Part shown: positions 12,489 through 45,887 of the stretch, in pieces
How the letters are laid out: each line of letters starts with the position of its first letter
Numbering within the stretch: position 1 is the first letter of the stretch
NCBI GenBank assembly: GCA_965112735.1
Contig: OZ218963.1
Coordinates: 2,232,001 to 2,296,000, forward strand
Length of the DNA stretch: 64,000 bases
Reading direction: 5' to 3'
From: Phaeosaccion multiseriatum
Taxonomy: Eukaryota > Protista > Ochrophyta, other classes
Made by a program: the position numbers and the translations under genes
Notes under the pieces: model-generated
What the model was told of the DNA's origin: nothing
The model's input: only the letters and a program-made list of their open reading frames with translations
Databases searched by the model: none

Positions 12489-12736
12489 TTGTCGAGATCG
12501 GAGTCAAGAAAAGGTACGTAAGTCAATGATAAAACGAGCGTTACGTAACCTTACGAGGGGGGGGTCTGAGCTTTGATTTCCCTTTGAAGAGCCCCCTAGA
12601 GCCTAACGAGCAGCCCTCCATTGATGGACATCACGCCCCTCGTGTATACACATATATTTTTCAAGAGGGTGGTGCATGGTCTCGCGTGAAGTAACGGAGC
12701 AAGCTGAAGGGAACCCCAAGGGGTTTGAGGATTGAA

Positions 12737-14245: not shown

Positions 14246-17200
14246 TTACATCGCTGGGGCACTGCGCTGCAGCAGCTCGAACCACTGCCTCAGGGCATCG
14301 GAAAGCACCTCCGGCATGGCCTCAAAGCGCTGCAGCACAATGTAGTAAGGGAAAGGGTACTTCTCCAGATAAGGCACAAACTTGATGCCAGATCCTGAAC
14401 CGCCCTTGCTCGAGGCGCCTCCCCCCTTTCCTCTCTCCATCACCATGGTCTGCGTTATCGACGACCGTCCATCCCCCTCACCATCTACCACCACCATGAC
14501 CAGCAGCTGGCCCCTCTCTTGCATGCGACGCATCACTTGCTCAATGAACTTTGGGTGGTTCCGGTCGTAAAAGCCGTCTGAGATCATGAACACCAATTGC
14601 ATGGGCACGTGACTGGTGCCTGACGACGACGCCCGAGAGGCTCCCCCTCCACTCCTCGCGCGATCCATCATGTCCGCCATCCTCTCCAAAGCTGCCCTCA
14701 GGTCCGTTCTGGTCTGTGCAAAGGTGAAACTGCCAGCTACCCTCGCGCCCACCTCGTCGGAGAAGGGCTGCCCGCTACCCCCACCACAGGTACCCTCACC
14801 CTCGAAGCCATGCAGTATCTCAGCGTCATCTCCAAACTTCACGACGGCAATCTCGCCCACCTCCAGCTGAGTCAGGCCAGACGCCACTGTGCTGAGGGCC
14901 GCCAACGCAAGCACTCCTGCTCCGTTGGCCTTCATGGACTCGGAGTCATCAATCGCGAGCACCACTTGGTAGGCTCGCTTGGCTGGCTTGGTGCGTCGGA
15001 GCCAAATCTTGTCCTTACGAAACCCGGAGGCAATGTACGAAATGACCCGGCGCATGTTGATGCGCTTCCCTGCACGGTAATCGCCCTGCAGTTTGGTGGC
15101 CACCATTGGCTCCAACACGAGACGCAGCTGCTCACAGAGGCGGTTAGAGAGAGGGGCCGTGGCAGCTCGGAGCTTGTTCCATAGCTCCCGCCCGGCCTCC
15201 ATACTATGCAGGCCATCGCCTTGGCTTGCTGCCGCCTCTTGATGAAGTGCCAGTTGCCGTAGTTCCTCCCGGATGCGGGCATCCAGTTGGTCCTCCTGCG
15301 TCGTCGACTGTTGCTGAGTCTGCTTGTTGCGCATCCACTCCAAAGGGTTGGCGAACACCGCCCCGCTGCCCTCGATGCGCTTCTCCTCGCCCTCTTCACC
15401 CCCCATCACAGCTGCGCGGATATCATCGGCCTCGGTTTCGAGGGGATCGTCATCATCCTCCGCCTCCTTATTCTCATCTCCGTCTACAGTACCCTCCTTC
15501 TCCGGTCTCTCCTCCTCCTCCTCCTCCTCCTCCTTTGCCTCGTGCGAGGCATGGGTGCTTTTCTTTGACCCAGACTTCTTCGCCTTGTCTCTTTCAGCCT
15601 CCTCCTCCGCCTTTCCCTCTTCCTCCATCGCCGTCGACGCCTCCTCTGGACTGCCAGCCTCGACACCATCCAACGAGTCGGCCAGAGCATCATCCACACG
15701 CGCTTCCTCTGGCTGCTGATGCTCGTCGTATTCTACATTATCCTCTCCCTCTTCGTCTGGTTTAGGGGTGGGAAGAGTCGGCGCTTTTTGGTCGTCCGGC
15801 GCTGCACCGAGCACTTGTCCGGTCCCCTCGTCGCCACCCTCGGTGTACTCGAACTTGGCGTTCTCGTCCATCTCGCGCGCTTCGGGCTGATCCGACGACG
15901 GGGCGGCAGGAGGCTCTGTGCGCAAACCCGACGGAGGAGAGGAGGGGAGAGGAGAGCAAAGGTGCACATTACAGGGGGTCGTTCTGGACGCGACGCACTG
16001 CACGACTTGCATCACACACACACTCTTTCTTCCTCTATGTCATTGCTCGAACAAAGAAGAGCTTCCAAAAACGACTCAGCCTATCCCCCTTCGTGGGAGG
16101 GACTTGGACCTGAATTGAGTTCAAAGCGGAGTCCACTACAGACCCGCTCGCTGAGATTCCCACTTGTAAGGTGTAGTCATCATTGTCAAAGAAGCGCCCT
16201 CTGCTGTCATCCCCGCCAAGAAAGTAAAACGAGGTAGAACGATACCCCCCCTCACCCCTTGACCAGACCTATTCTATCCTTTCGGCTGACATCAGCCACA
16301 CAACCACGATTGGACACACACACACACACCTGCCTCGCCCTGCTGCTCCTCCTCCTCCTGTAACATGTCCAGACGCTTATGCCAGTGCTGCAGAGCGTCG
16401 CCGGGGTTCCGGAACGGGTTGGGCGCTTCCTTGCGGCGTCGCTTGGCATCAGCAGCCTTGGCACTCTCCTCCTGCTCCTCTCGATTGGCGTCGTCTCCTC
16501 CACCCTCTTCGTCGCCTTCATCCTGCTTGTCGGGCCGCCACTCTCCTTCACCTCCATCATCCTCCCGCCCGTCGTTGGTGTCGTCCTTGCCCTCCTGCCC
16601 ACCCTCATCATCATCCTCCCCTCCCTCTTGCTCCTCCTCCTCATCCTCCTTCCCTTCGCCCCCCTCCTGAGCCTCCGCCTCCTTCTCCGCCTCCACCTCT
16701 TCGAGCACCGCACTGCTGCCTCCCTTCGCAGCGACACCATGCGTCGGCTCCTCCGGGGCCCCCGTATCTTGCTGAGGCTCATCAGGGTCCTCCTCCTCCT
16801 CCTCCTCCTCCTCCTCCTCCTCCTCCTCGCCCCCCTCTTTGCCCTTCTCCTCCGTATTCACAACCTCAGGGTTGCCCGCAATCCCCGCCGCTTGCATGTC
16901 CTGTTCCTCCTCCATCTTGGTGTCCTCATCCTTCTCATCCCCCCCTTCTTTCTCTTCCTCATCAGCTGGAGTGGTCGTGTCTGGCCCCTCTTCTTCTCCG
17001 TCCGAGCCTCCTGCTGAGGCTTCCTCCATGCCCCCGCCTTCCTCCTCCTCCACCTCCTCCTCCTCCTTCCCGTCATCGGCTCCGTCCAGGTTAAGGCTAT
17101 CAGGAACGTCATCTTCTCCCTCTCCATCAGCCCCTCCCTCTTCGTCAACATCCATTGCCTCCTCCTCCTGCCGCACGTCGATACCCGCTGGCTTTTCCTC

Positions 17201-20200
17201 GTAATCGTCCTGCAAGTCTTCATTAATCGGTCCACGGTCCTCCTCTCCATTGTCACCTTCGCGCTCTTCTTCATCCTCGCCCCCATCTCCCTCCTCCTGC
17301 TCTTTCTCCCCCTCGTTCCCTGGCTTCTTCTTCTCGCCTTCTTCCTCCTCCCCCTTCTTCTTGTCATCATCCTCTCCTTCCGCATCCTCTCCGTCCTCTT
17401 TCGTCCGCATCTCGTCCTCGATAGCTTCGCCCTCCATCTTTGAATCTTTCTCAAACTTCTCCTTCTTCTCCTCGCGCCCCTCATCCTCTCCTTCGTCTTC
17501 ATCCTCACTATCCCACATCTTCTCATCTACAACATTGGCATCGTCTCCCGCATCGCCCATTTCTCTCTCGAGCTCTTCTTCGGCATCCTCCCCCTCGTCT
17601 TCTTCGTTTTCTTCCTCCTTCTCCTCGTCGGGCAAATCGAACAGCTCCCCATCGAAATCTTGCTGCATCTCCATGCCTTCATCCTTCTCCTCTTCTCCCA
17701 GCTCCTTCTTCGTCTCTTCCTCATTCCCACCCTTGTCAGCACCTTCTTCCCTCTCCTCCTGTAGACCCAACAGCTGCTCCTCGTCCTCAATCTGGTCACT
17801 AACATCTTTCTTGCCCTCCCCTTCTCCCATGCCCGTTCCCTCGACATCGTCCGTGAACTGCATCCCCTCCGCATCCCCGTCCCCGTCCGCCTCCGACTCC
17901 ACCGTTTCGTCTGAACAAAGCCCCTTGGCCAAGAGCGTCCGAAACACGCGAACGCACACGTAGTGCAGCTTGCTCGTGCTCTGCCGTGACACATACACAC
18001 ACATACACACACGCACACACACAAGAAGACGCAAGAAAGAAAGTAGGTTTAAATGAGAGTGGGCGAGACAAGCAGCAGAGCTTGGACAGTTACAAAAGAA
18101 GCAAGAAGGGGGGGGGGCGGTCCTCATACGAAAGATGGTGATCTGTTTTCAAATCCACATATATGCGTTAAGAGTGGTGCATGAACTTTATAATCCTCGG
18201 AGCCGCCCGTCTATTGAATGCAGAGCTTTTGATTCAAGAGAGCCCAGAAAGGGGACAAAACAAAAACACCAAAGTAGCACACACACACACACACACACAC
18301 ACAAAGTTTCGATCTGACGGACCGTGTGACTGACCGTAACTCACTCACCTTTTGGCATGCCACAACGCCTTTCAAGAAAGTCCCTGCGGCCGCCTCCAGT
18401 TGGCGGGCCAGCCACAGCAAGTCCGCCACAAGACCACCGAATGTCTCTCCGGCCAGCACCAGCAGGGGGTGCCCCGCGTATCCCCGAGAGGCAGCGATGG
18501 CAGAGAAGTCCCGCAAGGCTGAGGACACTGCGACCAGCGCCGCGCCAGACCGCGACAGACGCAGCTGCTTGGCCTGCTTGAACATGCGCTGGTGCCTGTC
18601 TAACAGCGTCCCAGCCGAAGCTCCTCCCTCTTCCTCTTCCTCCTTTCCGCTTTGTTGGTGCCGCTTCCCATACTCGGTCGACGCCAGCGCTTGCACGCTG
18701 AGCAGCATTGCTTCCACAGCTGCCTGCAGGGTTCGCTGCATGCGCTCTGCCGTGTGTGTCACCACCACCTCGTCCTCCTCCTCCACCTTCCTCTCTCCCT
18801 GTCCCGCTCCCAACTCCTTCTCCTGCTCCTCCTCCTCCTCCTGCTGCTGCTCCACCCCCACCCCAGACACGGTCACCAGGGCACCCGTACCTTTGCCCAT
18901 CAACGACAACGTCTGCGGGAGTGCCACGGCCAGCCACGCTTGCATTGCTCCTGTCTCCATTTCGCTCGCTCCCCTCCGCGCCACCCCACGCAACAGCGTC
19001 TGTATCCTCTCCAGTGCTGCACTCACTGCCTGCGGAAAGTCGTGTCTTTCCACTGCTGAAGAGAGTTCTGCTTCGGCCGTGGATATCGCGTCTTGTGCTG
19101 TGAGCGCTACACAAGCAGCCTTGCCTCCTAGCAAGGGTTGAAGTGGTCTGGTCATGGCCATGCCGCCTTCGTGAGTCATGGCGACTGCAGCAGCGCTGCT
19201 AGTAGCACTACTGCCACCACCACCACCACCACCACCACCACCATCCAGCTGCCCCCGTAAAGCCCCAGCTGTGGCGCCCAGGCACTTCTCCACTCTCGTG
19301 ACGATGGGCAGGACAGCCCCGAGCTCCTGAATGGCCCGTCTATGCCTTGGCGCAGCCTCGTCGAGAGCGTTGCAGCCCGTTTGGAGCACTGCCCTCATCA
19401 TCAAGGAGAGCTCTCGGAGCGCTTCCAAAGCGAGACACGCCCCTTGCTGTTGGGCTCGGAGAATGGCCGCAAGGGGGGCCTGGGGAGGCAGGAGGAGTGG
19501 ATGGTGCGCGTTGAGCTCAACGACCAGTCGGGCTGCACCCTTCTCCTCCTTCTCCTGCTTTGCCTGCTCCTGCTGTGGGCGGCCACTGGAGAAAGCTCCC
19601 GCTGCCGCAGCTCCTGCTGTCCCCGCTGCTACCTCTTGTGCAGCGGCAGCGGGGGCAGCGCCGCAGCTCTCCAATGTTCTTAGCGCTGCTACAGTCGCCA
19701 CAAGTCCGTTTACTTCCTCCGTCACCTCACACACCATTGCCCTCTGCTGCAGCACCAACATCTGCAGGTGCTCACTCAGACCAAGCATGAGGCCGGACTC
19801 CCTTCGCGAAACGTCTCTCGTGGATGCGAAGGCCCCCTCTTCCAACCTCAGTCGCTGCTGCTCCGCCAGTCCTTTGAAGAAGTATCTCTCCGCGGAGCCC
19901 CACATGTCAGCGGACGAGCGAGGCGTTAGACTCAGAGGCATGCCGCCCTTGGCATAGCGCAGCGACAAGTGCAAGCCGGGCGAGGACAGTGACATGACTC
20001 GCCGCAAGTCCCTTGCTTCTTGTGGAGCGGCCGCCGAGCGTGCCGAGAGTCCTTGTCTCTGCAAGCCCCTAATGAGGTCAAGCACGGCGCGCTTCTTCAC
20101 AGCCCTTGTAGCCACGTGAGCCTTCTTGGTCGTCGTTCCGTTCTCCCCCTCTTGTCCTCCCACCCCTGCCGCTTGTGCATCACCAACGCCCCCGCCACTA

Positions 20201-23200
20201 CTCCCCTCCCTGAGAGTGTGAATCCGCCCAAAGATGGCCAAACTCAGCTCCTCCGCGAGCCGCGCCACTTCGAAGCCCTGTCCTCCTCCGCACCCAGGCA
20301 GCATCTCTTGCTGCTGCTGCTGCTGTTGCTCTTGTTCGCGTAGACGCTTCCCCTGCCCACCGCCTGACCCCTTTCCGAACACCACCCTCCTCAGGTGGCG
20401 CTGCATGCGATGTGCAAGCGAAGGAAGCCTTGCCAGCAATGTTGAGGACAATCGCGGCTCGTGACTGTCATCGTGAGCATCTGAAACGGCGCCCGCCAAG
20501 AGCGGGGTCGACAGGCATTGGGGAAGCACCGTCCCCGTCTCTGAGAGGAGTGTCGAGGCCTGGTCCACACTCTGCTGCTGCTGTTGCAGGACGTTGTGGA
20601 AAGGCCCAAGCGTGTAGAGCTCTCTTGGCTCCACCAGCACCTCGCTCTCCAGCGCCGCCAGCGTTGTGACCGGGGGCTGCACCATCAGCATGGACTTGAC
20701 CACGTGACGACTTCTCTTTCCGACCTTCTTCTCCTTCTTCTTGCCCTTCCCCTTCCCGCGTGTCACGTCATCCTCCTTCTCCTCATCGCCGCCATCACCC
20801 CCTCTCTCCTCCTCCTCCTCCTCCTCCTCCTCCTCCTCCTCTGCCTTGCTGCTGCTTCTGTGACGAGCAGGTGGAGCGAGGTCCGCTGCTCCCGTCTCAG
20901 CATCGAAGCGCGACACATGCATAAACATGGAGGCGTGAGAAGGGACTTCGGTTGACGGGGGCGGGGCCATGCCCTCCTTCCGCTCGCCAATGCCTACGGT
21001 GATGACCCTGAGAATGATGCTGCTGGCCGGTCCCTGTGTGGCATCGGGGCCGGACCGAGGTGGGTAAACATACATTCATGCATTCATTCATTCATTGGTT
21101 CATTCCCCACGTCCCGGGCCATTTGCAACAGCAGAAAGACGGACAAGACAGACAGAGAATATTGAAGCAGGCAGGCAGGCAAGCACAGGGCGAGAGAGAG
21201 GCACGTGAGGATGGGAGGGGTGTAGAAATTGGGGTGCGCACCGATGGCGACCCAAACTTGGACTGATTTGGTTGCCATCTCTCCTCTCTCCCCGAGGAAA
21301 GAAAAGACAGATTCGAAACCACACTACAGTTGCATGTGGCTGCGTGCGTGGGTATGGGGGCAATATAATGATGGAGGGTTAAGGCTTCAGTGCCACAGAA
21401 ATTGGCAGATATTTGGAGTCTCATTACGCCAATGATATATTGGCGCGTCGAAGGTGTCCTAAGTATATGATAAATCGTCATCGCCTTGCCGCACCATCAA
21501 TTAATAACACCAATTCCCATCTCCTTCTCTTACTTAATCTTAACTAACACATGTTCCCTCTCCCACACACCTGAAGAATGTCGTCGTACTCCCTGACGAG
21601 CTTGGTCAGCTTGCGATGCGACTTTTCCGACGCCTCCGCCAGAGAGTAGTACGTCTGTTCATCCCACTTGCTGAGCCGGGCCTCGCCCTTGAGCTTCTTC
21701 TCCACGCCATCTCGGAGGCTCTCGCGAGTGCTCGATATGTCTCCCGAAAACTGAGAAGAGAGGAGAAGAGAAGAGGGGCGAAGAGGCGCAAAGCAACACA
21801 CACACCACCAGGGGAGTAAGGTGTGTGGTGGTAGCAGGGGGTGGGGTGGGTGGGGATTCGAAGCGAACAAAAGAAAGGATGAGAAAAGAAAGACACAAAC
21901 TTGAAAGTGTCGACACCACAAACAGGTCCGGCTTTGGTTTGGACCAATGGAAGAAGGTTTGGGGGACGTTGTCGTTATGGTACCCAACTTGGGGTAACAT
22001 ATTTCGTTCTCAGCAAAAAGTTGTTTGAAGCATGGCGACCAAACAGAGGGTCGAATCATAGTTTAATTAAAACGTTTTTGAAGCATCAGAGAACATGAAT
22101 CCGCCAACTCCCTCTCTCCCGATGGAGCAGGATGGAGCATGTCGCGCCCAAACAACTTGAAGCAGTTGTCACACCCCGCCCTTCTCCCCCCCCCTCAAAT
22201 CTCACCTGGTCGTAGTAGCGCCACAGCGAATGGAGGAGATTCGCTGCCTCCTCCGCCTGCCGCTGCGGCTGCTGCTTCATTGTGGCACCAGCGGCTCCTG
22301 CCATGTTTGTAGTTGCCACACCCCCTGCCTCCTCGACCATCCCACTGGATGAGCCACCACAACCGCTAGGAAGGGTCGTCGCGACAAGCTCTGTCGTGAG
22401 TCCTGCCTGGGCTGCAAAGGCCCGGATCATGTCCAGACGGGCCGCAAAGTCCCCGAGGGTGGAGGTGCGGAGGAAGTCATCCAAAGCCGAGAAGAGCTCC
22501 GGTTTGATGGCACAGTCTCTTCCTTTACCCTCACCCTTGTCCTCACCCCCGCCTTGAGTCTTGAGCAAGCCCTGCCAAAGCCAGCTGGGAGGAGACCCAG
22601 CAGGGGCGATGAACTCGACTTTTGCTGACGCTTCTGACGCCCCTGAATCCTCTGGCACCTGTACTTGTTTGCTCTGGACGTCCCCTCCGACTGCAGTAAC
22701 TTTCTCGCGCATACCAATGTGATCGGCAAGAAGGCCATACAGAGGGAGCCACAGCCGATGCGCATTACTCTGTGCCCTCTTCTCTCGCTCATCCAGCATA
22801 CGAGCCCAACCCGCAAGCTCCAGCTTTCTCCACCGCGCCACGAGCGAGGAGAGAGGCTTGAGCTCGGCAGTCAGGCTCACGCCTCTGTGTGCGAACTGCT
22901 CCCAGTCTTGCGACTGTCGCAACAGAAGCTCGACTCCGGCAAGCACGGCGGCCACGGGAGAGTGAAGTGGCAACCGTCGCAAGCGGTCCGACAGACGAGC
23001 GATCCGCACCAAGACGGCATGCCCCGGGAACTGCCCAAACAGCTCAACGACCCTGTGCATAAGGTGAGAGAGAGGGGCGTCCACAAGCTTCACCTCAGGA
23101 GGGTTGGAGCCACGCTGAAAGTCGAGGGCTGTACTCGACGACGATGCTTCCCCAGACCCGGGAAGAGGAAACAAGCGTCGAAGAGAACGCTGCAGCTCCT

Positions 23201-29200: not shown

Positions 29201-32200
29201 CAACTGCTGCTGCTGCTGTTGATCATCTTCCACCCCGCCGCCTCCTGCCTCCAGCCAGGCCCTCTCCACCACAGGCCCTACGTACGTTCTCCACTCCCCC
29301 ACACCCCCTCCGGGGAAAGCGAGCACGAAGGCCTCTCCCAACCACGGAAGAGGAAAGGACAGTAACGCTCCATCACCCTCACGTCCGTTCCCTCTCCCAC
29401 GCCTGGGGGGAGCACCTCTCTGCATGTACGCCACCGCCAGCTCCCCCCAGTGCGTGAGGTGACGAATGGTGGGCAGCGGACGACCCCGGAGTTTACGCCA
29501 TTGACGGCTCGCCGCACACCCCGCCAGCATGGCCCTGGCCACGGAGATGTCCACCACTCCTTCCGCAAAGAGAGCCTGCAGAGCGTCTGAGGTGCCCTGC
29601 GTCGGCGAGAACGTCGTTGCTGCCTCGCTGACAAGACGGTCTGTGCCAGTGCCGGTGCCAGTGCCAGTTTCACTGCCACTCTCCGTGCCAGCGTCTCTGG
29701 TCGACTTTCTCCTCCTCTTCCTCGACGTCCCCCTGCCGCTAGAGGGAGACGATAGCGAGAATCCCGCCCCCAGTTCCAATGCGCGAGGCAGTGCCAGCGT
29801 CGGAGAGGGGTCCAAGAGTGACACTTCCACACAGCGGTTTCGCATCGCTCTGGACATTTCTCCCACCGACGGGTCAATGGCCAAAAACAGCCGGAAGGAG
29901 GGGTGGGGCTTAACGACGCGGTATCCTCCGCCGCCATCCCCACTACTCGAAGCCGCCGTCTCTTCGCCGCCACACTCACTGAGCAGCAGCTCCCCGTCCG
30001 TCTCTAGGAGAGAGTTGAGTCGGTCCAGGACACTGGCCGCGCAGAGATTGGCCCCTTCCAGCAGCACCCAATGGCCCTTTTCGAGTGCTTCTACCAGCAG
30101 TCCGTCCCGCCAACGAAAGCAGGGCGCTTCTCCTCTTCCTGATGTATCACCAACTGCTGGAGTCTGGTCCCCTCCAGCGGAAGGAGTTGCGGAGCGTCGT
30201 ACTTTCCTCGTGGACTGCTCGAGCAACGCAGACACTTGGGCCAAGCCCTCTTCCAAGCCTTCCAAGCTTTCTTTCCGTCCTTCCACTCCCCCTTTTGCCG
30301 CCGTCGCTGCTGCTGCTGCTGCTGCGGCGGCGGCTCGGATCCACACTATCCCTTGCTTGACCCTAAGCAGAACATCTTGTGCCATTCTCACTCCCGCGTC
30401 ACTGAGACAAAGACCATGGGAGGAGACCGCCGCGGCTGCCGATGGAAGCACCGCCGCTGCATCTGTACGCCCCTCTCCTGCCTGTGTGGAGAGCGGTGAG
30501 GTGTAGCTGCGCGAGAAAGAGTACCAGGCCGTCCACACGCTCGACAACAGCGATGCTGGTGTCGGTGCAGCTGTGTCGCCGGCTTGACTCTTCTCCATGT
30601 GGGCGGAAAGACTGCGGCAGAGTCGGTAGGTGAGTGCCTGATGGGGAGAGCAGAGTGAGTGTGGTGGATGGAGGGGGGAGAAAGGGAGGGTTGTGAGCTA
30701 AGGCGCTCCCCTCTGTTTGACAGATAGGTGCTGTGCTGACATTTCAGCCCATGACAAGTAGTGTGGAGATGGGGCTTTTCCCTTCCTCCTCTCGAAGGAG
30801 GCTTAAAGTGAACAAGTAAGTTTCACACATGAGGCCTTTTGAAGGCACATAGCAGTCACAATCTGACAACACCATCACATCGGTTCTTTCCTTCACTCGC
30901 TGTGTGTTACTTTCAGGCAGCGCGGAAGGCACTAGAACGTCAACGAAAAAGAGACTCAGACTCTCACCTCAAGGCCGTCCACGAGCTCTTCCATCGTCGC
31001 TCGCGCGTCCACCTTTGAGTCATGTGATTTTCGCACACAAGGGTCAACACACATGCATCCCGCAGAGAAGCAACCAACGCCAAGAAGTGACAGCGGGTTA
31101 GAAGGGAACAAAAGAAAACGAAAGAGAAGTGAGAAACAGAGAAAGAAAAAAAGAACAAAAGCCTCGCACCCCTCTGCGATGTTCAATGCGGGTAGCATAC
31201 AGAGCTTCAGAGGCAATTATCGGGAGTTATTTCCAATTGGAAGGAAGAAGAAGAAAGCAAAGGGACAAGAACGAAAGAATGGAAGAAATGGGTTTCGACT
31301 AGGACCGGCATATGGACACACTCTCAACCCCCGCGAGGAGGGGCGACAATCCCGCTTGTCAGACATGAACGAAGCCCTACCAGCCAGGCGGTTACCCGGC
31401 GGGCTTTATGTTTGCTCTGCCCCGATTTTAACAGTCACCCCGCTACTGAAGGCGCGAACGGCGAAAAATACGTCGGGGTGACCAGGACTCAAAAAACAAG
31501 ACAAAAGAAGAAGCAACACAAATCCTCCTCCTCACGTAGAGATGCTTCTGTCGACCCATCGTGCTCTGCACTACGGGCGTACGTACGTACCTGTTCGTAA
31601 CAGCCCAAGAGCTCGCTGACGTCTGTGGAAGGAGTCATCGCCACCACTCGGAGAGCTGCACCCAACGCATTTGCCAGCCCAGTCACAAGCGATGTCTTGC
31701 CTGACGAGCGGTGGCCCACCAGCAGGCACGGCCAGGACAGCGCCACGCACCTCGCTACCGCCACGAGAGGTCTCCGGTTCGTCATGGGCAGGAGTATGGA
31801 GCTGCTGCTGCCTCTGTCCCCGGCCCCTTGACCACGAGGGCAGCGACCCCAACCACCTCTTGGCAATCTCAGCCCGGAACCCGCTCGTTGCCCACCTCCT
31901 TCTTCGGTTCGCGACAATGATGGTGGTGGTGGTGCGGTGCCGAGCTCCAGAGAGTTGGGGTGCACGGAGAGATTGGGTATCCCTCCCACCGCCGCCCGGA
32001 CCTCGTCCAGACTCAAGTCGAAGGCCTGGCCGTAGAGGGCAAGGATGGCGTTTCTGTCTTGCACGGTGCGCATACGCTGCAGGTAAACGGTATCCACCAC
32101 GTCGCCAGGATACCAAGCTTGCTGTTGCCTTCCTTCTCCTCCTTGTCTTGCTCCGCTTCTTCCCCTTTCCTCCTCGCCCTCGGCCTGCTCTCTCCGACGG

Positions 32201-35200
32201 GGCAGGTGGCGGTTGCAAAGCTGTTGCTGTTCCTGCTGCTCATTGACCATGATGTCGCACCAACGAAAGATATCACGAAGGTTGAACTCCCAGGGAGAGC
32301 CGGTGCTGCCGATGGTACGCTGGTCCATTGTTGCGGACTGCACGAGGCTTTGGGGACGTGACGAAACATTTATTTTGTACAATCATTTCGCGCCACGCCC
32401 CAAACAAAAACACATGGAGGGGAGGAGCGAGAACAGAGAGATGCGTACATTTGAGAGGGAAGAGGGGCGAGGGGGGGAGGTAAGAGCAGGAAGGAATACA
32501 GGGGGGGGAGGAGAGGGCGCTACTGCGAAAAAAGGCGGAGGCATGGCTCCGCTATCGTTTGCTGTACGCTGTGACTCCTTTGGGGTGTCAGAAAAGTTGA
32601 TGCAATCACAAGGAGAGTGGGGGGAGGGGGGGAGGGGGGTTTACCACGGGGCTTTTACCCTTTCGTGGCACCCACAACCCGCCGTCCTTCCCCCTTCCCA
32701 CGATATCATCGAAAGCGACGAAGCAGAAATTCTCGTCACCCACCCCGAGTCCCCTCCAACTCCGATTAAAGCCACAGAGGGAAGAATCGCAGGCAGACAG
32801 CCAGTAGACACAGACAGGCAGGTAGACAGACAGGCAGACACACACACCCGCGCCGCCGCCACCAATACACCTCCGTCCCATCCCCCCCTTCGACCTTTGA
32901 CCACACACCACAGCTCTCCACTTCAACAAACTAAGCCCCATCTTTGCTAACCTGTTGAAGCGCACCATCCGCTCGAGCATTTCCTTCCCATTCTCGTCCT
33001 TGGTCGCGGAAGCAGCGCAATCGGACCCACCCTCCTTGGTCATCTCGTCAGCAGCGGTGGCGGCTGCGGTGCTCCCCTTCCCTCCCTTGTCCACCAACTG
33101 CGGATACTTGTGGGAGACAATAAAGATCAAATCCTTGGGGGTGAGAGCGTCCACAAACACCTTGGTGAAGCGATTGAGAAAGCTTTTGGGCAAGCCCTTT
33201 CTGCCCCCTCCCTGCCCTAGTGGGTTCTGTGCACAAAACACCCGAAACGAGGAGGGGCAGGCGAAGGTCCTGTCGAGCTCAGGAATGTACACGGCGGCAC
33301 GGTGGTCCAAGCACGCGTTCAGGCCCTCCAGCACGCTCTGAGAGGCAAGGTTGAGCTCGTCCAGCAGCACCCAATGGCCCTTTTTGAGAGCGTTCAAAAA
33401 CACCCCGTCTCTCCACGCGAACCCCCCACCACCACCGCCACCACCACTACCAGCCCCCCCCTCCCTTCCGGCTCCACCACCGGGACAGTCTTCTCCGACG
33501 GGAAGATCGGAACCCATGAGGTCGGACAAGTCCGTTTGCTCCGAAAGATTGATGCGCACGAGGGTGTGCCCGGCCGCGGCTGCCAGGGCAGAAATGAGAC
33601 TCGTCTTGCCCACCCCAGGGGAGCCTTCCAGGAGAATGGCCTTGGGCAGCTGCATGGCCCGTAGCACTCGGCGAAGGTTCTTACGCGTGGTGGGCGACTC
33701 TAGAGAGTAGTGCAGCGTTCGAGGAGGAGGCAAGGCACCCCGGCGAATCGTAAAAGGTGGAATACCGAATCTCCCCTCGGCCGATGCAGCAGCCGCCCCA
33801 GCCCCAGCCCCTGCTCCAACGGGGTCGGCTTTGCGCCCGGTTTGGACAACACGCTCACCATCCTCATCCTCATCCTCAGTATCAGCAGTCGGATGATGAT
33901 CATCATCATCACCGTCTGCGAGGAGGTGAGCCTCGGCCAACGCGCGCTCCTCTGCTCCACACACCGACGACTGTGGAATACTCCCCAGTACCATCTTGGC
34001 ACAGACATTCCTCAGCTTGGTCACTTGGTCGGGCGCCAAGCCCGTCCCCAGACCCAACCCATCCAGCAGCACGAGTGAGGCTCCGTGCGCAAACGCCAGC
34101 CATGGTGAGAGGGCACCTGCCCGAACCACGTCCTTCGCGAAACGTGCCCACGCCAAAATGTCGCGGATGGACAGTGCCAGGCCGTGTGTGGAGCCAAACT
34201 GAGGCCCTGCTTCTTCGTTGAACCACTGCACGAAGGCCATCATCGGACCTGCCAGCAGAGGCACCAACTCGCTCTCGCTCTCCAGAGGCCTGCTAACGCC
34301 AACAACACCTGCTGCACCAAGGCCACCACCAGCACTGTCGACGCCAGCACTCCGGAGAGGAGGGGTGCGGTCTGGTGCGTGAGCCGCAGCAGCGGAAGAG
34401 GCAGGAGACCCCAGCGCCTTCATCACCACCATCTTGACATCGGCAATGTCGCTCATGGGAGGCACCCAAATCTCTGTAAAGCGGCTCCGCAAGGCAGGAC
34501 TGAGCTCCCGCTTTCCAAAGTCGCCCCCCGGGTTCATGGTTGCCAAGATGCGGAAACCCTCGGCGGCGTACAACTCCTCAGTCCCTTCTGATCCTCCTCC
34601 TCCTCCTCCTCCCCCGCCTTTCTCAGCCAGGACAAGAAGACGTTTGGGCTCCAGAACAGAGTTGAGTCTCTCCAAGACAGCATCCTCTGCCAGGCAAATC
34701 TCGTCCAGCAGCAGAAGGTGCCCTTCCCGCATGGCTGAGGTTAGAGGCCCGTCCGCCCATTCGAACATGCTCCGATAACGAGTCACCAGTACAAGCGCGC
34801 TCTCTCGAAGCTTTTCCACCCGTGCAAAGGCTGCTGCCGCTGCTGCTGCCGCTGATGCCACCACCTCTACCGCTACTGTGCCCTTCTCCTTCCCCTCTTC
34901 CTTTCGTTCTGCCGTCTCCGCGTCACCTCTCCCCTCGACAACGCCTTGCCCTCCCAGTTTCGCGGCTGATGCAGCCCCTACTCCCACAGCAGTCTCTGTC
35001 TCTACCGCGGTCACTGAGGTCTTTCTCTGTCGCTTCCTTCTGCCTTTCTTCTTCTGAGAAGTCTCCTGTCTCGAACTCTGCGCATCCGCGCCGGCATCGG
35101 CGACCGCCTGATGACCTGCAGGGGGTTCATGAGCTGCAGCCGTATTGGCTACGCCGGCGTCCGTGGTACTCATTCGCCTCCTCTTCTGGCGGCCTTCTCC

Positions 35201-38200
35201 TCCTTCGTCACCGCCAGCTGTGGTGGCGCCTCTCCTCGTTTCACCCTTGCTGTTGTTGTTGCTCTTGTTGCTACTGCTACTGTTCTCCTCGAGTTGACTC
35301 CACGCCCTGCGCACCGAAGCGTAGGCCACCTGATGGATGGGTGATGGACCAAACGGGCAAGGGGAGGGAGGGGTGCAGAAGGTGAGTCGAAACAGAACGA
35401 AACCGCTGAGTGATCGATGCGTCCCTCGGCCAAGGGACTGGTACGGTATACTGTGGTAGGTCAGAGTCAAGGCACACTGCACGAACAACGAGAGGCAAAC
35501 ATCACACAAGGCACGGAACACCCCCCCCTTACCCCCAAACACATGTAAAGGGTGCTGACATGGCCCAAGCTCAAGCAAGCATGAAAAGGCGCGGGCCTCG
35601 CAGTTTGAGCGCCCATCTTCCAATCCGCCCAAGGAGGAGAGGAGTGTCCAAAGGACACCCCTTCCCCCCTCTCTTTATAGGGAGAGTCGTGGAGTCACTT
35701 TCGCATCCGTTTGTTGACCGATCTAAGGCCATAGAGGAGACTGGCACGAGACGGAGATACCAGTATGCTTGCGTCCGTACGTACGCTTACGTACGTTTGT
35801 GTGTAAGGGAAAGAGAGAGGGGGGGGGGTGTTTCCAAGATCCTCCTAAACTCGTTCCACATCCCCTGCTTGTGTGTGTGGTCGATTCTCTCCGCCTCTCT
35901 CTCCCTCTCTTCTCTCTCTCTCACACACACATGCCTTCACATGCGCGCGTATGTGACTCCCCACACCCCCTTGTCTCTTACCTCTAGGGCTTGGTGCATC
36001 GCCTTGACACTGGACGCCTCGTCGTCCTCCTCCACCACCACAGAGGGCACCTCAACCGCCGCCGCCTCTTCTTCTCGACCTCCTCCCTCAGAGTCGGTGG
36101 GTGCCTCCTGACCCTCCTCCTCATTGACCCCATTGGCTGCTTGAAGTTTGATACTCGTAGGGTCCAGCAGGCGCTGGTGTGAGGCATGGAGCCTGAGGAA
36201 CGTTCCACACTCGGCATGGAAGGTCGCCAGCAGCGTCCGAAGCTGCGTCAGTACGTCACGTCGGCCTCGCACGGGTCGTAGCCCTCCCAACAAGTCGCCC
36301 TGAATGATGAAACGGCCACGGCAAGCGACGAAGCAAGAGGTCAGGCGTAGGAAATGGGTAGGAATATAATAAACTACGACACTTCATGCGGAGAGGGGAG
36401 GGGGTCAGGACGGGGGGAGGCTTGGAAAAAAACAGGTCTGGAAAAACTTACCGCCTCGGTGTTCTGATGGCAGTTGACAATGTGCAGCTGATTGTGCAGC
36501 AGCAGTGAGAAGAGCTGACAAACGGTGGTCTTGCCGCAGCCTGTGTCCCCCACAAGCAGCACCGGCTCCTTGTGTTCTAGGCAGCGACCGACTAGGCGGA
36601 ACAGACGCTTCAGCGATTGGGTCAGCGCCACGCCCTCAAGGCCGCGTGCTGCCTCCTCGTCTACAGGCCCCGCCCCAGCCTCGCTCGAGGTCAGCCCACC
36701 ACCCCCCTCCTCATGAGGGTTCCCCTTGGTCCCCTTTCTATCGAGCAAATCTTGAACGTGCTGCAGTTGCTGAAGACTGCCCTGCTGGTGCTGCTGCTCA
36801 TGTGTGTGTGTTTCTGGGTGCACGAGTGAAGCCGAAGCCGAAGCCGAAGCCGAAGCTGCCGCAGAGGCTGGTGGGGACAGGTCGTAGAGAAGCTTTGTGT
36901 CGATTCTGACGCCAATCTTATCCTCAAGCACGGCGAGAATCTCGCTCCGCTCGGCAGCGCTCCGAAGACGTTCGGCAATGAGCATATATCTTGGGCACGA
37001 AGTATAAGGCATCAAGAGCAGATCAAGAGCAGTCGCAATCATTTTTCCGAGGCGGTGGCACACAAGGGGAGAGAGGGGGGGCGGCGATGATTCGTTAAGT
37101 ACTTCTTGAGTACTAGAGCGTAGGCGGAGCTAGTGAGACGGAAGGATGTAAACGTAACTGTGGAATACCTCATGTGCCTTCCCCTGCACCACGGCGTGAA
37201 GCGTGACCAACACAGCCCCTCCCGGCCCTCGGCTGCTAAATGCCCTTTTTGGCCCAGGCACAGGCAAGACTCCGCCACAACCCCCGCCTTTCCGAAACGC
37301 CTTCATTTGGGCACCATTTTGGTGTTCCCGAATGGCAACGAATCGATGCATAAGGAAGGGCCGAGTCAAGCCCGTACCCAGAGGCCGGACGCGCTAGAGC
37401 AACCAAGGGCCCAAAGCGAAGGGGGGCAGGGACAAAGGCTTTCACAATCGCCCGCTCTCTGTCTGTTACAACAGGAAATAGACAAGTGCGAAAATTACTC
37501 TAGCTGAGAACTGTAACGGACCGTCTGACATGTGCCCATAGGGCTCACAGGCGGTTAGCTGGACCAGCATTTAAGCCCCCCCCCCTCCCCCCCTCTCATC
37601 CACACAGCAAACATGAAGAACCAAAAGACAGAATGCTCCTTTACCGCATCATTCGGTGAAAGGTTGAGAGGCAACGCGGCATTCCCTTCCCTCTAAAAAG
37701 TCAATCATGCTTCCCCCCATGGGGCCCAGAGGGGGGGGACTTCCCCCCTCCTCCCCCTCTCCCTCCCTCCCTCCCTCCCTCCTCAACTCACCCTTCCTCT
37801 GCGATCTCCTGCTTATTCTGCGGCTTGCGCATGGCCCAGCGGAGCATATCTCTCGGCGTGATGAAACCGTGCTTGCCCTGGAACACACCGCTTTTCGTCC
37901 TGCGCACATGGAGAGCGTCGAGCACAGCCACCAGCAGCTTGCAGTGGGACGGAGGCATGCCACAGCGCTGGGTTGGGTGGGGTGGGAACAGACAAGAGAC
38001 GCCACGCAAGCAAGCAAACAAGCAAGAAGAAGAGGGAGAGAGAGATGAGGTGGGCGGCGAAGAGGGGGCGAGAGGAGTCGGTGAGTGGGCAGTTGATAAG
38101 AGGACCTGCAAGACGACAAGGCCCCTCTGTTTCACTTGTCGTCATCAATCGATATACAGAGGACTTACTCCATATCACATCACAGATGGATACGCCGGAC

Positions 38201-41200
38201 CACAACACGCCCACTTGCCCTCCGGTTTGATAGGGGCCCTTCCGTTCCTCCACATGACATACTATCCATGCCCTGCAGCCCTAGCACTGCTTTCACCCTC
38301 ACCCTTCTCCCTTGACCCTCACTCTCACTATCACTCTCACCCTCACCCTCACTCCCACCCTCACCCTCACCCTCACTTTCACCCTCACTCTTGCTCACCA
38401 TGGCCAGAATGTTCTCCCATTCCGCACTGGGAATATCGCCCACGTGCACCTCCAGAAAGCGATTCCGAAACGCTCGAGACAATGGTTTCCTTCCCCCGTA
38501 GGCGCCCGGCGGATTCTGGGTCGCAAAGAGCTTGAAATTGGGATGCGGCGTCACTACCGTTTGCGTCTCCGGTATGAAGAGCTCTCGATTGTCGTCCAAA
38601 AGTCGATTGAGAGCCTCGAGCACCTCGGAAGGGGCGAGATTGAGCTCATCGAGAATGATCCAGTAACCGTTACGCAGCGCCTCCACGAGAATGCCCTCCT
38701 GGAAACACAACTTGCCGTGCTCGTCCGCGCTGTAGCATCCCGTGTACTCCTGAATGTCCGTGTGCTCGTGATTGTTGATGCGCACGCAGCGGTGGCCGCA
38801 TCGGGCGGCCAGATACTCAACGAGTGTCGTCTTGCCGGAGCTGAGGGGGAGGGTTGAGTTCGGGTACGAGTGGTGTGAGGGGAAGCACAGCACAGAAGAG
38901 GCGAGGGTGGGGAGGGAGGGCAGTGGATGAGATTAAACATTCGCTCGCTTGAAACTTGCTGCCTGCTTCTGCGTCCGCTGTTGTATTACTTTTGTACCAC
39001 CCCCCCCCCCCTCCCCTCCCCGATCAGAGCGATGATTTGAGGATGAACAGAAGGTCAACGATTGATCAGATATTGGTTCATTGATTGATCAGATCGTGGG
39101 GCATGTTTTGTCGTCAAAAAGCGGATGCATGACCCTGCCCATCCGCAATGCTTTTCAGCACCGCAGCACGGGAGGCACAGAACCATAACGAACAGGTCTA
39201 TGATAAGTCATGGGCTCTTATCCTCATCTCAATCCAATCCAGTTTCCAATCCGACGGGGCCCGTCCCGTGTCAACAAAACACACTCAATTTGAATAATAA
39301 AGAGGGAGGAAGAGAGAATACCAAGGGCAATACTCTGAAACAAGTAAACACAAAGCACGGGACAGCACAAAAATCTCAGCCAATAAAGAAGCCGACCTAC
39401 ACACTCACACACACTCTCCCCCCCCCCTACCTGGTTGGGCCCTGGAGCAGGATGGGGCCGTCGCTAACCTTGCAGGCGCGGGCCACCGTGCGCAAACTGT
39501 CCTCCACCGCAGCGGTAAGGATGAAGCGCGTGAGTCCAGTCTCGGAGTCCCTCTTGGCCCAATCTTGCTTCTCCAACGCCCCGCACGGGAGCCAAAAGGG
39601 TCCTATGACTTCCCACTGTTCGGCAGAGCTGCCACGCCCCCCCGGGCGGCGAGGAGGGCGCTCCCAGTCTCGTTTGGACACGTCTTTGCCAAAGGCACTG
39701 GGATGGTGGGAGATGGCAGTCCATGGGAGATGGGGGGTGGGGAGGGGAGGGGAGGGGAGGGGTAATGTGAGATGCTTGGGGCTGGGGGATGGTGTGAGTG
39801 CAATGATCGGCGTTTCAAACACATGCCAAACAGTACCCCCACTCCCTTCACACCTCATGATCTTCTTGTGTAGCTTCGGTCTACTGGCTCCGTCCAGCTG
39901 CGTCTCAAACGAAGCCGCAAAGCCCTCCACCAGGGCTCGAGCGAGGCTGAAACCGCCATCCTCCGCCAGCACACGCGCGGCGTTCAGCGCTCGACAGAGC
40001 GTTCGGAGGGAGTAGCGAGGACACTGCCCTGCGCCATCTGTGAGCCCCTCCGCGGCGTTCTTGCGGCAGTGGAGGTAGAGGTCGACGATAAGGGTGCGGT
40101 GCGCTTCCGTTACGCCGACCATGTCACTCAAGTACAGCTGCACGACCACACGGAGGTCGGCAAGGTCCGTGAGCTCCGGTACGAAGAGCTCTGTGAACCT
40201 GCTCCTCAGGGCCGGAGGGAGGTCCTTCTTGGCCGCGTCGGTAGGAGGGTTCATGGCGGCGAAGATGCGAAAGTTGGGGTGGCGTCGCACCGTGCTCGTG
40301 TCGCCCTTCTCCATGAGGCACACGGAGCCCTCGCTGCCCTGGGCATTTCACATTCATTGACATATGAACAGGAGGGACATTTGGGGGGGGTGTTCCGTGT
40401 GTGCGTGCGTGCGTGTCGTCCAGTACCCACCCGGCCGGAGCCGGAGATAAGGTTGACGGTGCGCAGAAGAGAGGAGCAAACAAAGCAAAAGGCGAGGCAA
40501 ACACACACAACAAAAACCGTATAGATGTGTTGTCAAAAGAGTCAAGAGAGGGTGGTGAATGAAGAAATAGAGAGCGAGTGCGAGTGTGCGTGCGCGTACG
40601 ATGTGTCAAATGAGGGGAAAGGGATCAGTCCATCTAGTAATTGAAGGGTCCACAAGATTCCTTCAAAAAGGCCGCGGCGACTAAACCGCTCTCGGAGTAG
40701 CTGATTCGTTGGTCATCATCTCCCTTCCATCTCTCTCATGTCTCCCCTCCACTCGACCCGAGCGAGCGAACGGGTTGAGCGAGCGCCAAAATACATGCAC
40801 TCACTCGTGCACACTGAAACGCAAAACACGACAACACAACTCGTCCGAACTCTCTGAGCGCATGTATGCCGAATGAATGGAACCACAGCAGCACCACCAT
40901 CTCAAAGCACACACCACCCAACCCCACCCTGCCCCACCACACTTCCTCTCCTATTTTACAACTGTCTCCAATGTACCTCACCTCAAGCAGACCAGAGAGG
41001 CGCTGCAAAGTCTCTGCCGCGGCGAGGTTAATCTCGTCAAGGAGTACCCAGTGGCCCTCACGAAGAGCCTTGACCACAAGCCCTTCCACAAAGGAGAAGG
41101 CAAAGGCGCCATCCACGGCGACTCTGTATGTAACCGTCACATGACGAAAAGGGCCGCAGCCCACAGCGAGACAGGGGAGGGAGGAGAAGAAACAGCAGAG

Positions 41201-44200
41201 TGTGACGTCAGCTTCCTCTATTTCGGTGAACGCTCAGGTGGCTTCGCAGATCAGAGAAGTCTGCCCTTCTTGTTTGGTCCAGTGCAGAACGGCACGTCTT
41301 AACTTCCACCGCCCGGCGCCCTTTCCCTCCCCTCCCCTCCCCCACCCGGCCTCACTCCGTGTCCGAGTGGAGCGGTTGCTTCTTAACTTGTCCAACTTTC
41401 GCTTCGCATGCAAGCGTGTTTTTTTATCCTCCTACATAAAACAAATCAGTTCTCAAACTTTCAAAAAAAAAAAAAAAATGCTAATCATCAGGAGAGTACA
41501 GACATTTAACAGTACATGCGTCCGGTCAACCAATCAACCAACCAGCCCACGCCGTTCCATCCCCTACATATACATACACAAAGATATACATATATATACC
41601 GCCCTGAGCCCATCCTCCATCCTCGCGTGTTGCTTACACCGAGTGACTCTTCTCTTCTTTCCACTCCCACACCCCGAACCGCACGTACCTCTGTCTCTCA
41701 AAGCGCGCCACAGCATTGCTGAAATCGGTCCATAGCCGCCTCAGCTCAGGCACGTCCAACTCAACTCTGCCAGCAGCAGCCGCACCATTACTTCCGGCAG
41801 CCACCTTCTTCCTCCCAATTTCCCCCCCTCCCCCACCCCCCCCCCCCATATTCTCGTCGCGCCGCTGCCGCTGCTGGTCCCCCTGCTCTTCACCACCCTG
41901 CTGATGCTGCTCCGCCTCTTTGCGGTTGAGCTTGGCCATCGCCATGCTAACCGCGTTGTTGAGCCCCACCGACAACCTCTTCCATTGCCTTCTCTCGAAG
42001 CAGAGGGTGATGGAGGCCTGGAACTTGGCGTTGGCTTGCTCAGAGAAGAGCGTGGGGAAGGTGGAGAAGAAGCGGTCCAACACGTCCTGAACCAAACAAG
42101 GGCAAGTATAAGGGTACACACAAGTGAAGCAAGGGCACGCATGCACACACACACGCACACACACACACAAACACACGCATAAGCACAAGGGGGAGAGGCC
42201 GGGTCAGGACTAGACAAATGGCGCACAAGGAGGGGAGGATGGCAGTGAATGGGTGGCGCAGTTTGAGCACGCGTGGGGAGCCTCTGTGTGTAGCCCGTCA
42301 GGTAGTTATGAAAAGAATCGACACGTGTTTAGTTCGGATCAGATCTTGGTAATTTCAGTTTCATCGTCACGGGGCTGGGCTCGGCTGCGCGCACACAGAG
42401 CTTTGGCTTTGGTGCATTCGTCATGAGGGGCAGAGGGGGGGGGAGTAAGAAGTATAATGGGAGGGCAGGGGAGCGCCTTCTTCCTTGCCTTTATGTTTCT
42501 CCGCCCCACTCCCCTGCCCCTCCCTCTGTTGAAGCAAAGATTTTTCAATCTACACATCAAAAAAAAACCCGTCGTACCTGAGCCAGCTGCCGCATCTCCA
42601 CCGGTCGATAGCCGCCCAACAGATCCGCGCTGTCCGTCTGCAGACTCAGATTCTGGACAACCAACTTCTGCCCGAGGCTGCGCGCCAACTGTTGCACAAG
42701 GGTGGTCTTCCCACACCCCGTTTCACCCACCAGCAGCAGCGGCTCTCGCAAGGCTACACCTGCTGCGATTCGCTCCATTAAGCGCAGTGCCTGCCCTGTG
42801 TGAGCGAAGGAGGAGGAAGAGGAGGAGCCCGAACCCACTGCATCGGCCGCTCCTCCTCCCCCCCCCGCTCCGAGGGCCCTTGACCTGGGTAAGTTGACTC
42901 GGCCGATAGTCACGTACGCCTCCTTGACGGTGAAGGAGGGACGACGAGAGAGCACCACGTCCATCAATGTCTCGGGCCGCACCTGCATATGATGGGCACC
43001 AATCGCAAGAGAGAAACATGACCAGTAGAGGAGGAGAGAGGGGAAGAGAAGGGAAGAGAAGCAAGAGCAAAAGACCAAGAGCGGCAGCGAACAATAGACG
43101 GGTAGGGGAGGGGGGGGGGGGGGTGAGGACGCGCGTTCGATACCCTTTTCGAAGGGGAGACATTCTCCTCCAAAATGTTCTATCTTCTCCTGTACTCTAC
43201 GTGGGTGATTGATTGATCAGATCGTGGGGCATGTTTTGTCGTCAAAAAGCGGATGCATGACCCTGCCCATCCGCAATGCTTTTCAGCACCGCAGCACGGG
43301 AGGCGCAGAACCATTATGAACAGGTCTATGATAAGTCATGGGTTTTTATCCTCAGCTCGATCAAAATCCGACAGCGAATGAGAGGGGAGACGTTTTCCCC
43401 ATCCACCCACCCATCCACCGATACTATAACCCAATCGCCCCACGAAACGCCAAAGACCATTCGTACACGACACACCCCCATGAATAATCACCATCCACGT
43501 ACCTGCCAGATGGATGCAAACGCCTCGGCAACGGCGGCGAGCTGATCCGTGGAGGGTAACGCGCCGGCGAAGACATCAAGCGCCTCCACGAGCACCCGCA
43601 GTGTGTCGCTCTCTGCGCAAACCAGCCCTCCCTCGCCCGCAGCCTCTGACAGCGTCATACCCCTCACGCGCAAGCCGGAGGGCGGCAATGAAGGGACGGC
43701 GGCGCCGCTCACGTCGTCGTTGGCTGTAGTAGCGGCAACCCCTCCCGCCCCCCTGGAATTGCCTGGGTCCTCGGTGTCGATATCGATGTCAGCGAAGTGC
43801 CCGAGCTCGTCAACGCGACGGCACAGCTTGAGGAAATCACGGACATTCGGCGCTCTCCCTCCTCCTCCTGGGGTTGCTACTGCTACTGATGCTACTGCTA
43901 CTGCTGGTGGCGGTGCTGGTGCCAATGTCGACCCCCCCCCCGTTGCTGGAGGACCTGCATTTGCGACATCGCCGCCGCCCCTCTTGCTACTGCTGCTGCC
44001 GCCCCTGCTGCTGCTGCTCCCACTAAAGAGCTCGAACGTGCGCAGCATTCTCGCCACAACCCGAGGAGGGAGGGCCGGAAACTGTTCACAAGCCACCACC
44101 CAGAGCTCTTCCGGCTGTAAGCTGCTGATACACACGTGCGTCCACAGGGCGCCAAAGTCCGTACTCCCTCCCAACATGACGGCGTGACCGTGATCGCCAT

Positions 44201-45887: not shown

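Follow-up and report, generated by a model that had tools for sequence, protein, structure and literature searches.

Nine candidate box C/D guide RNAs in the introns of the midasin gene of the ochrophyte alga Phaeosaccion multiseriatum

Genes that carry small nucleolar RNAs (snoRNAs) in their introns are textbook material, and the mechanism by which such RNAs are released is not new. The 64,000-nucleotide (nt) stretch of Phaeosaccion multiseriatum DNA analysed here (assembly GCA_965112735.1, contig OZ218963.1, positions 2,232,001 to 2,296,000; hereafter the window) raises the question of whether the gene for midasin, a remodelling ATPase of pre-60S particles, can be a host of this kind. The minus strand of the window carries, at 14246-45887, a gene for midasin (MDN1/Rea1) with about 15-16 exons, and a first-pass annotation of the same DNA, made from the sequence alone, had proposed that its long introns each yield about one guide RNA. 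Our analysis indicates that midasin is very probably a multi-snoRNA host in this alga, with nine intronic box C/D units which we designate c16, c18, c21, c22, c32, c39, c40, c42 and c43 (Table 1).

The gene was identified from its domains and from its colinearity with known proteins. The long minus-strand open reading frames (ORFs) contain the Pfam domains AAA_5, AAA_lid_7 (the midasin AAA lid), MDN1_4th and a C-terminal VWA/MIDAS domain, and tblastn shows the ORF chain to be colinear with full-length midasins such as P0011 (5386 amino acids), with 46-47% identity to the best representative midasins in the AAA core. The nearest proteins are brown-algal, from Discosporangium for exon 1 (39% identity) and, for the MIDAS exon, from Ectocarpus fasciculatus and Scytosiphon (51-52%) and Choristocarpus (43%). 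Judged by these comparisons the host alga is ochrophyte-like, with no close sequenced relative in the collections compared. Exon blocks were set from homology, open frames and GT-AG sites; four introns are clear, and the remaining exon borders, placed without RNA reads, are approximate. All nine units fall between homology-supported exon blocks and lie on the minus strand, which is the sense strand of the host, as the first-pass annotation had stated for its C/D RNAs. That annotation had listed eight such RNAs together with a long candidate at 32582, and at each of its coordinates a sense-strand unit with boxes and a stem was found to end on its 3' side.

The box C/D units exceed chance expectation. 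A structure-only scan (C box with at most one mismatch, CUGA, stem of at least 5 bp, total length 55-170 nt) returned five loci in the sense introns versus one in the antisense, while dinucleotide-shuffled sequences gave a mean of 0.87 loci and none of 200 shuffles reached five. The sense introns make up 6.5% of the searched space, yet they hold half of the ten loci that the scan returned when both window strands were included. C boxes are canonical in c16 and c40, have one mismatch in c21, c32, c39 and c42, and have two in c22 and c43, which keep the U2-G3-A4 core; the GA dinucleotides of the kink-turn (K-turn) are retained in every unit, c18 included. Terminal stems of 4-8 bp are present in all units apart from the doubtful c41, which is discussed below. 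A D'-hairpin-C' layout occurs in c16, c21 and c40, with c22 possessing the D' box and the hairpin together with a weak C' box. The D' boxes are recurrently of the type NCGA (GCGA, UCGA, CCGA and CCGA here, and ACGA in the homolog of the metagenome contig L129). Most units stand alone in their intron, but a strict spacing of one guide per intron is not supported: c22 and c21 occupy the same 1172-nt intron, and the open frames between them do not show the codon pattern of the true exons (high GC at the first position, low GC at the second). Three short introns had been described as empty, and the one examined, of 221 nt, was confirmed.

Cross-lineage conservation is, on the sequences compared, the strongest evidence that these units are snoRNAs. 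The relatives used were two contigs of one Joint Genome Institute (JGI) metagenome (L129 and L131), Ectocarpus fasciculatus (L128) and Scytosiphon promiscuus (L130). The L129 and L131 midasins are about 40% identical to the query in the last exon, and a homolog of c16 is present in the orthologous last midasin intron (E14/E15) of both, at 9757-9846 in L129 and at about 2020-2110 in L131. The three RNAs share the C box plus CUAC, the NCGA D' box, a UGUAGUG block and the C' box, and all have kept the 13-nt guide, AAGUG(U)GGAAUCUC. Their terminal stems are GUUGG/CCAAC in the homologs vs UGAC/GUCG here, a compensatory replacement. Another L129 midasin intron contains a C/D RNA with the 25S guide of c18 (CACCAUCUUUCG), and in a third there is a C/D RNA, canonical throughout, with a D guide perfectly complementary to 18S rRNA over 16 nt. 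In both metagenome contigs a gene for a SmpB-domain protein lies just downstream of midasin on the opposite strand (L129 12406-12967, L131 4664-5252), and this common synteny suggests two related organisms.

Homologs of c22 are found in brown-algal midasin introns (L128 7094-7172; L130 4491-4569). They correspond to a 77-nt island in the 3' part of the gene which is 91% conserved between the two algae while its flanks diverge; c22 and the island have the same C-box end and guide (GCUUCAAA..UUUAAUUAAACU), followed in the brown algae by a canonical CUGA. The Scytosiphon homolog lies inside the annotated intron 4178-5128, one of two units there, and the intron occupied by the brown-algal homolog differs from that of c22 in our alga. 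Like this island, the c16 homologs of L129 and L131 are conserved next to diverged flanks. Because homologs occur in the midasin introns of the metagenomic organisms and of brown algae, midasin appears to be a snoRNA host in several lineages; and since hosting recurs and one snoRNA sits in an orthologous intron, the association of host and guides appears to be long-lived. No homologs of c40, c42, c21 or c39 were found in the relatives' midasins, where the 5' gene halves lay outside the comparison, and the distant midasin loci L125-L127, L001 and L002 had nothing in common with the candidates.

The brown-algal midasin genes contain, in separate introns, two to three copies of another element, 164 nt long (L128 2015-2177, 3243-3407 and 7373-7535; L130 1354-1517 and 4747-4910), and between the two algae this element is 90-94% conserved. 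A hairpin forms its 5' part, and a C/D-like unit comes after it (stem UUGACAG/CUGUCAA, AUUAUGA...CUGA). A search of the element for conserved rRNA complements found none.

Table 1. Candidate box C/D units and clear introns of the midasin gene, in window coordinates (asterisk, predicted 2'-O-methyl site; LSU, large-subunit rRNA)
Feature	Position (strand)	Type and terminal stem	C, C' and D boxes	Guide, sequence after it, complement	Predicted 2'-O-methyl site
c43	43209..43365 (-)	long box C/D, c39 paralog; in intron 1	C CUGAGGA 43355-43349; D CUGA 43220-43217	UAUCAUAGACCUGUU 43333-43319; 15-bp complement to conserved 18S AACAGGUCUGUGAUG	
c42	42294..42374 (-)	box C/D, about 75 nt; CCCG/CGGG	C GUGACGA or ACGAUGA 42370-42361; D CUGA 42301-42298	AUUACCAAGAUCUG 42353-42340; D' CCGA 42337-42334 (or CUGA 42342-42339); conserved LSU CAGAUCUUGGUGGU	CAG*AUCUUGG, or U two nucleotides 3' of C, by D' box chosen
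c41	41446..41491 (-)	doubtful 46-nt unit, extra to the first list	CUGAUGA-N35-CUGA		
c40	40617..40727 (-)	canonical box C/D; 7-8 bp	C AUGAUGA 40719-40713; C'-like UUGAAGG 40666-40660; D CUGA 40628-40625	D' guide GAAUCAGCUACU 40707-40696, then CCGA; D guide UACUAGAUGG 40639-40630, then A and CUGA; both to overlapping parts of conserved LSU CCAUCUAGUAGCUGGUUC	CCAU*CUAGUAG*CUGG
c39	39083..39234 (-)	long box C/D, c43 paralog; 6 bp, GAUUGA/UCAAUC	C AUGAGGA 39227-39221; D CUGA 39092-39089	39205-39191	
c32	32582..32746 (-)	165-nt box C/D candidate; 6 bp, GGGGUG/CACCCC	C GUGACGA 32739-32733; D CUGA 32591-32588		
c22	22006..22094 (-)	box C/D; GUUC/GAAC; internal hairpin 22053-22036	C CUGAUGC 22089-22083; D CUGA 22013-22010	GUUUUAAUUAAAC 22073-22061, then U and AUGA (D'); LSU	GUUU*AAUUAAAAC
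c21	21381..21487 (-)	box C/D; AAGGC/GCCUU; internal hairpin 21445-21427	C AUGACGA 21481-21475; C' AUGAGAC 21424-21418; D CUGA 21390-21387	CUUAGGACACCU 21463-21452, then UCGA (D'); LSU	AGGUG*UCCUAAG
c18	18116..18207 (-)	SNORD32-like dual guide, mid-intron; 8 bp, GGCGG.UCC/GGA.CCGCC	C CCGAGGA 18200-18194	18S guide UCAUGCACCACU 18184-18173, then CUUA (D'); 25S guide AGAUCACCAUCUUUCG 18144-18129, then U and AUGA (D)	18S GGUGG*UGCAUGG (GGUGGUGCAUGG); 25S CGAA*AGAUGG (CGAAAGAUGGUGA)
c16	16072..16189 (-)	box C/D, last intron; UGAC/GUCG	C AUGAUGA 16183-16177; C'-like UUUGAAC 16125-16119; D CUGA 16079-16076	AGUGGGAAUCUCA 16164-16152, then GCGA (D'); LSU	UGAGA*UUCCCACU
Intron 1	43502-43190 (-)	holds c43			
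Intron	24025-23805 (-)	221 nt			
Intron	22205-21034 (-)	1172 nt; holds c22 and c21			
Intron	18348-17981 (-)	holds c18			

The unit c18 is the one that can be connected with described families. When Rfam was run in E-value mode on portions of 32 kb, 4.3 kb, 6.2 kb and 0.7 kb only weak microRNA (miRNA)-like hairpins and c18 were returned. A search with 126 nt aligned c18 end to end with the plant family snoZ221_snoR21b (RF00300; 22.6 bits, local E-value 0.0057), with plant snoZ196/R39/R59 (RF00134; 21.8 bits) and with Drosophila snoMe18S-Gm1358 (RF00533; 15.2 bits), scores that lie below the respective gathering thresholds of 44, 55 and 50 bits. Its 12-nt 5' guide is the consensus of Z221/R21b and Me18S-Gm1358, and its 3' guide AUCACCAUCUUUCG is that of R39/R59, a 25S guide shared over 14 nt; relative to the boxes, the guides occupy the slots that they have in those families. 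The differences concern the boxes and the arrangement: Z221/R21b and Me18S-Gm1358 have CUGA as D' box where c18 has CUUA, Z196/R39/R59 have CUGA as D box where c18 has, after one nucleotide, AUGA, and c18 unites two guides which plants keep in separate Rfam families. Since guides and layout match, c18 would work like these RNAs, as a SNORD32-like dual guide for 18S and 25S rRNA; since its scores fall under the thresholds, it is not a formal member of any of the Rfam families. Human U32A, a dual guide for 18S G1328 and 28S A1511 which shares its host RPL13A with U33, U34 and U35A, has the same pair of 18S and LSU guides. The order of its arms is reversed, c18 having the 18S guide at D' and the 25S guide at D. 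On both sides of c18 its intron contains (GU)n microsatellites (18270-18300 and 17990-18040, minus strand), and other introns likewise have GT-rich runs close to their donors, one of them around 16320.

Complementarity to rRNA supports the snoRNA reading without being its mainstay. An Rfam search of the whole window showed it to be devoid of rRNA, and the targets were taken from eight complete eukaryotic rDNA units on metagenome contigs, annotated with Rfam. Six entries (c16, c21, c22, c40, c42 and the c39/c43 pair) have a complement of at least 12 bp to conserved rRNA in the guide slot. A guide of at least 10 nt ending 1-2 nt upstream of D or D' is present in c18 and c40 (at both boxes) and in c16, c21, c22 and c42, a count that accepts NCGA or AUGA as D' box and uses metagenomic rRNA, not the alga's own. 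Conserved-core 11-mers were only mildly enriched in the sense introns (5/34 vs 2.2 expected). When the targets were limited to the 1.5 kb conserved in at least six of the eight rDNAs, comparison with shuffles gave p values of 0.007 for c18, 0.006 for c42, 0.012 for c39 and 0.06 for c40, with a combined Fisher p of 0.001. No such conserved-core complementarity was seen on the antisense strands of the units. Scans for complementarity anchored on CUGA, or free of any anchor, were noisy.

The guides had been described in the first-pass annotation as mostly directed to the LSU. Complements to LSU were found for c16, c21, c22, c40 and c42, but complementarity scores are weak by themselves, and guidance to known LSU sites is not supported beyond c18, whose sites are the only ones verified. 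A text search of the literature with the guide and target strings returned only rRNA polymerase chain reaction (PCR) primers and small interfering RNAs (siRNAs), so that among the predicted sites only those of c18 are tied to published sites or families. In the internal spacer of c42, outside the boxes and the guide, position 42330 shows T>C at about half depth in three DNA runs, probably a heterozygous site. Just past the 3' end of midasin the minus strand has, at 12668-12681, a 14-nt perfect complement to 18S rRNA (GGUGGUGCAUGGUC), and the plus strand at 12368-12407 has two 11-12-nt complements to the 18S 3' region; convincing C/D boxes were not seen around either.

The long units c39 and c43 form a 164-nt duplicate of 94% identity, a repeat that exceeds the RNA only slightly in length; the stem of c43 has 7/8 pairs with one mismatch. 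Less likely, their RNA may contact the two strands of helix 34 in 18S rRNA and serve in folding, or as a guide of acetylation type, instead of in methylation. An snR4-like acetylation guide was considered for the pair and rejected: the second 18S match spans only 11 nt, two of its pairs being G-U, and within it the target C would be paired instead of bulged out. The unit c32 has an imperfect 18S complement upstream of its D box.

Several candidates and features of the introns stand apart from the nine units. Two H/ACA-like RNAs had been suggested, and neither survived, the box layout being found in neither. That at 31354..31484 (-) has only a weak 3' hairpin with ACA, without the hairpin-hinge-hairpin-ACA layout; its 5' hairpin offers no rRNA pocket at the right distance, and the arms flank AG, not U, in 18S rRNA. 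The other, 37144..37568 (-), is one long imperfect hairpin without H or ACA layout, with a minimum free energy of -182 kcal/mol (z -3.6 in the sense vs -1.6 in the antisense orientation). The additional c41 was not accepted as a confident snoRNA: it comprises 46 nt with a U16 run and lacks a terminal stem, and the 12-nt complement to LSU UUCUCAAACUUU directly 5' of its CUGA is not above shuffles. GC-rich purine/pyrimidine inverted repeats at 42424-42523, 42801-42880, 38900-39020 and 35803-35921 give weak sub-threshold matches, on both strands, to many unrelated miRNA precursor models, and are probably simple low-complexity hairpins. A minisatellite of GTGAGG/GTGAGA type (38320-38405, minus strand) lies just past the donor of the intron that follows exon 38848-38405; its word depth in all four DNA runs is 25-100x that of its flanks on the contig, and it is therefore abundant genome-wide.

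A number of observations weigh against midasin as a host of functional guides. The sequencing runs that cover the locus are of DNA only, cover the introns at uniform depth and show no splice joints, and midasin is usually a low-abundance transcript, atypical of snoRNA hosts. The rRNA used for comparison is that of other, metagenomic eukaryotes and not of this alga. Over the whole 5.6 kb of rRNA no single candidate is significant in shuffle tests (p 0.07-0.5), for which reason complementarity cannot carry the case alone. The Rfam check proposed in the first-pass annotation yielded 0 matches in the whole window at gathering thresholds, and what it contributes is the sub-threshold full-length alignments of c18. 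The boxes of c18 are themselves weak, with C in place of U2 in the C box, CUUA as D' and AUGA as D. The 3' end of c43 is only some 15-20 nt from the acceptor, an unusual nearness to the 3' splice site, and the guide of c39 and c43 is followed by CGUU or CAUA, with no recognisable D' box. For c32 the only strong rRNA complement (15 nt, perfect, to conserved LSU GGUGUCAGAAAAGUU, 32584-32598, minus strand) overlaps its own D box and 3' stem; by a rough estimate ~0.1 such complements would be expected window-wide, and it fits no canonical guide geometry. Finally, the predicted sites of c40 and c42 are not known to match any yeast or human site, a point to which we gave no weight.

Could such units have arisen by chance? 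Combinations of xUGAxGA, CUGA and stems of 4-6 bp might occur fortuitously in GC-rich introns, and the rRNA matches might be the background expected of 80-nt sequences. This would suit the non-significant whole-rRNA complementarity of each candidate, the mildness of the core 11-mer enrichment, and the many matches that loose box scans return in purine-rich coding sequence. It does not suit a structure-only scan that lies above 200/200 shuffles and above the antisense strand, the full-length alignment of c18 to known families, the homologs of c16 and c22 in other midasin introns whose flanks have diverged, or core complementarity that is specific to the sense strand at the Fisher p given above; the chance reading is strongly disfavoured and to our minds scarcely credible. 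It is also very improbable that the snoRNAs are real and derive from promoters of their own or from a separate overlapping non-coding transcript instead of from midasin introns. Runs that contain only DNA carry no information on splicing or expression, midasin is in general lowly expressed, and c21 and c22 share an intron in the manner of plant polycistronic clusters, all of which such transcription could accommodate; every unit, however, is on the host strand and inside an intron, and the arrangement recurs in the midasin genes of other lineages.

That some units are decaying copies or retroposed relics, leaving fewer working guides, is a proposal that touches c18, one of c39 and c43, c32 and c41, and we consider it improbable. 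The C, D' and D boxes of c18 are all off the family consensus, c43, compared with c39, is altered at two C-box positions and has its stem broken, a duplicate of only about RNA length (164 nt) fits snoRNA mobility, and c41 is just 46 nt long. Yet both guides of c18 are intact (12 and 16 nt) and its terminal stem is of 8 bp, the K-turn GA dinucleotides occur in every unit, the identity of c39 and c43 over their final 100 nt speaks against free decay, and the lineages of c16 and c22 are conserved across distant taxa.

If midasin is the multi-snoRNA host proposed here, the box C/D units would be transcribed within the midasin pre-mRNA, freed by splicing and debranching, and trimmed to the C/D K-turn bound by the core proteins; fibrillarin would then be directed to rRNA for 2'-O-methylation at the position that lies five nucleotides upstream of D or D'. 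Expression and processing of the units would follow this course, and the targets listed for units other than c18 are likewise predictions. The role of midasin in pre-60S maturation may be coupled, functionally or by regulation, with the guides. A more far-reaching view is that the link between midasin and its guides is ancient, predating the split from the brown algae and from the organisms of L129 and L131, that it was kept by selection for coupling guide supply to transcription of the pre-60S ATPase, and that snoRNAs have shifted introns within the gene; as a whole we regard this scenario as possible but unlikely.

The closest parallel is human RPL13A (SNORD32A, SNORD33, SNORD34, SNORD35A), likewise a coding gene of the ribosome pathway with several sense intronic box C/D snoRNAs. 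It specifies a ribosomal protein and has four units, and the present gene a pre-60S remodelling ATPase with about nine. The multi-snoRNA hosts GAS5 and the SNHG genes, and biogenesis-factor hosts such as NOP56, NOP58 and NCL, typically have one snoRNA per intron; as we propose for midasin, splicing followed by exonucleolytic trimming frees their many intronic snoRNAs. GAS5 and the SNHG genes do not encode proteins and are transcribed at high levels, whereas the host here exceeds 31 kb and encodes ~5000 amino acids or more, and it departs from hosts of the GAS5/SNHG type in having two units in a single intron and a unit whose end is ~15 nt from the acceptor. Several snoRNAs may occur in one intron in the intronic clusters of plants, which c22 and c21 resemble, as do the two units in the Scytosiphon intron; in contrast to plant clusters, most units here are single in their intron.

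The first-pass annotation knew of no midasin host on this scale, and that agrees with the literature searched, in which no paper links midasin with intronic snoRNAs; an Ectocarpus paper that mentions snoRNAs has automated predictions only, used for read masking. What appears new within that search is midasin as a host, with about nine units, and an apparently long-lived association of host and guides in a group with hardly any catalogued snoRNAs. From these units follow concrete guide-target predictions. Scans at Rfam thresholds overlook these RNAs wholly, and the traits of the lineage, namely NCGA-type D' boxes, weak C boxes and units near the 3' splice site, could improve the annotation of snoRNAs in stramenopiles.

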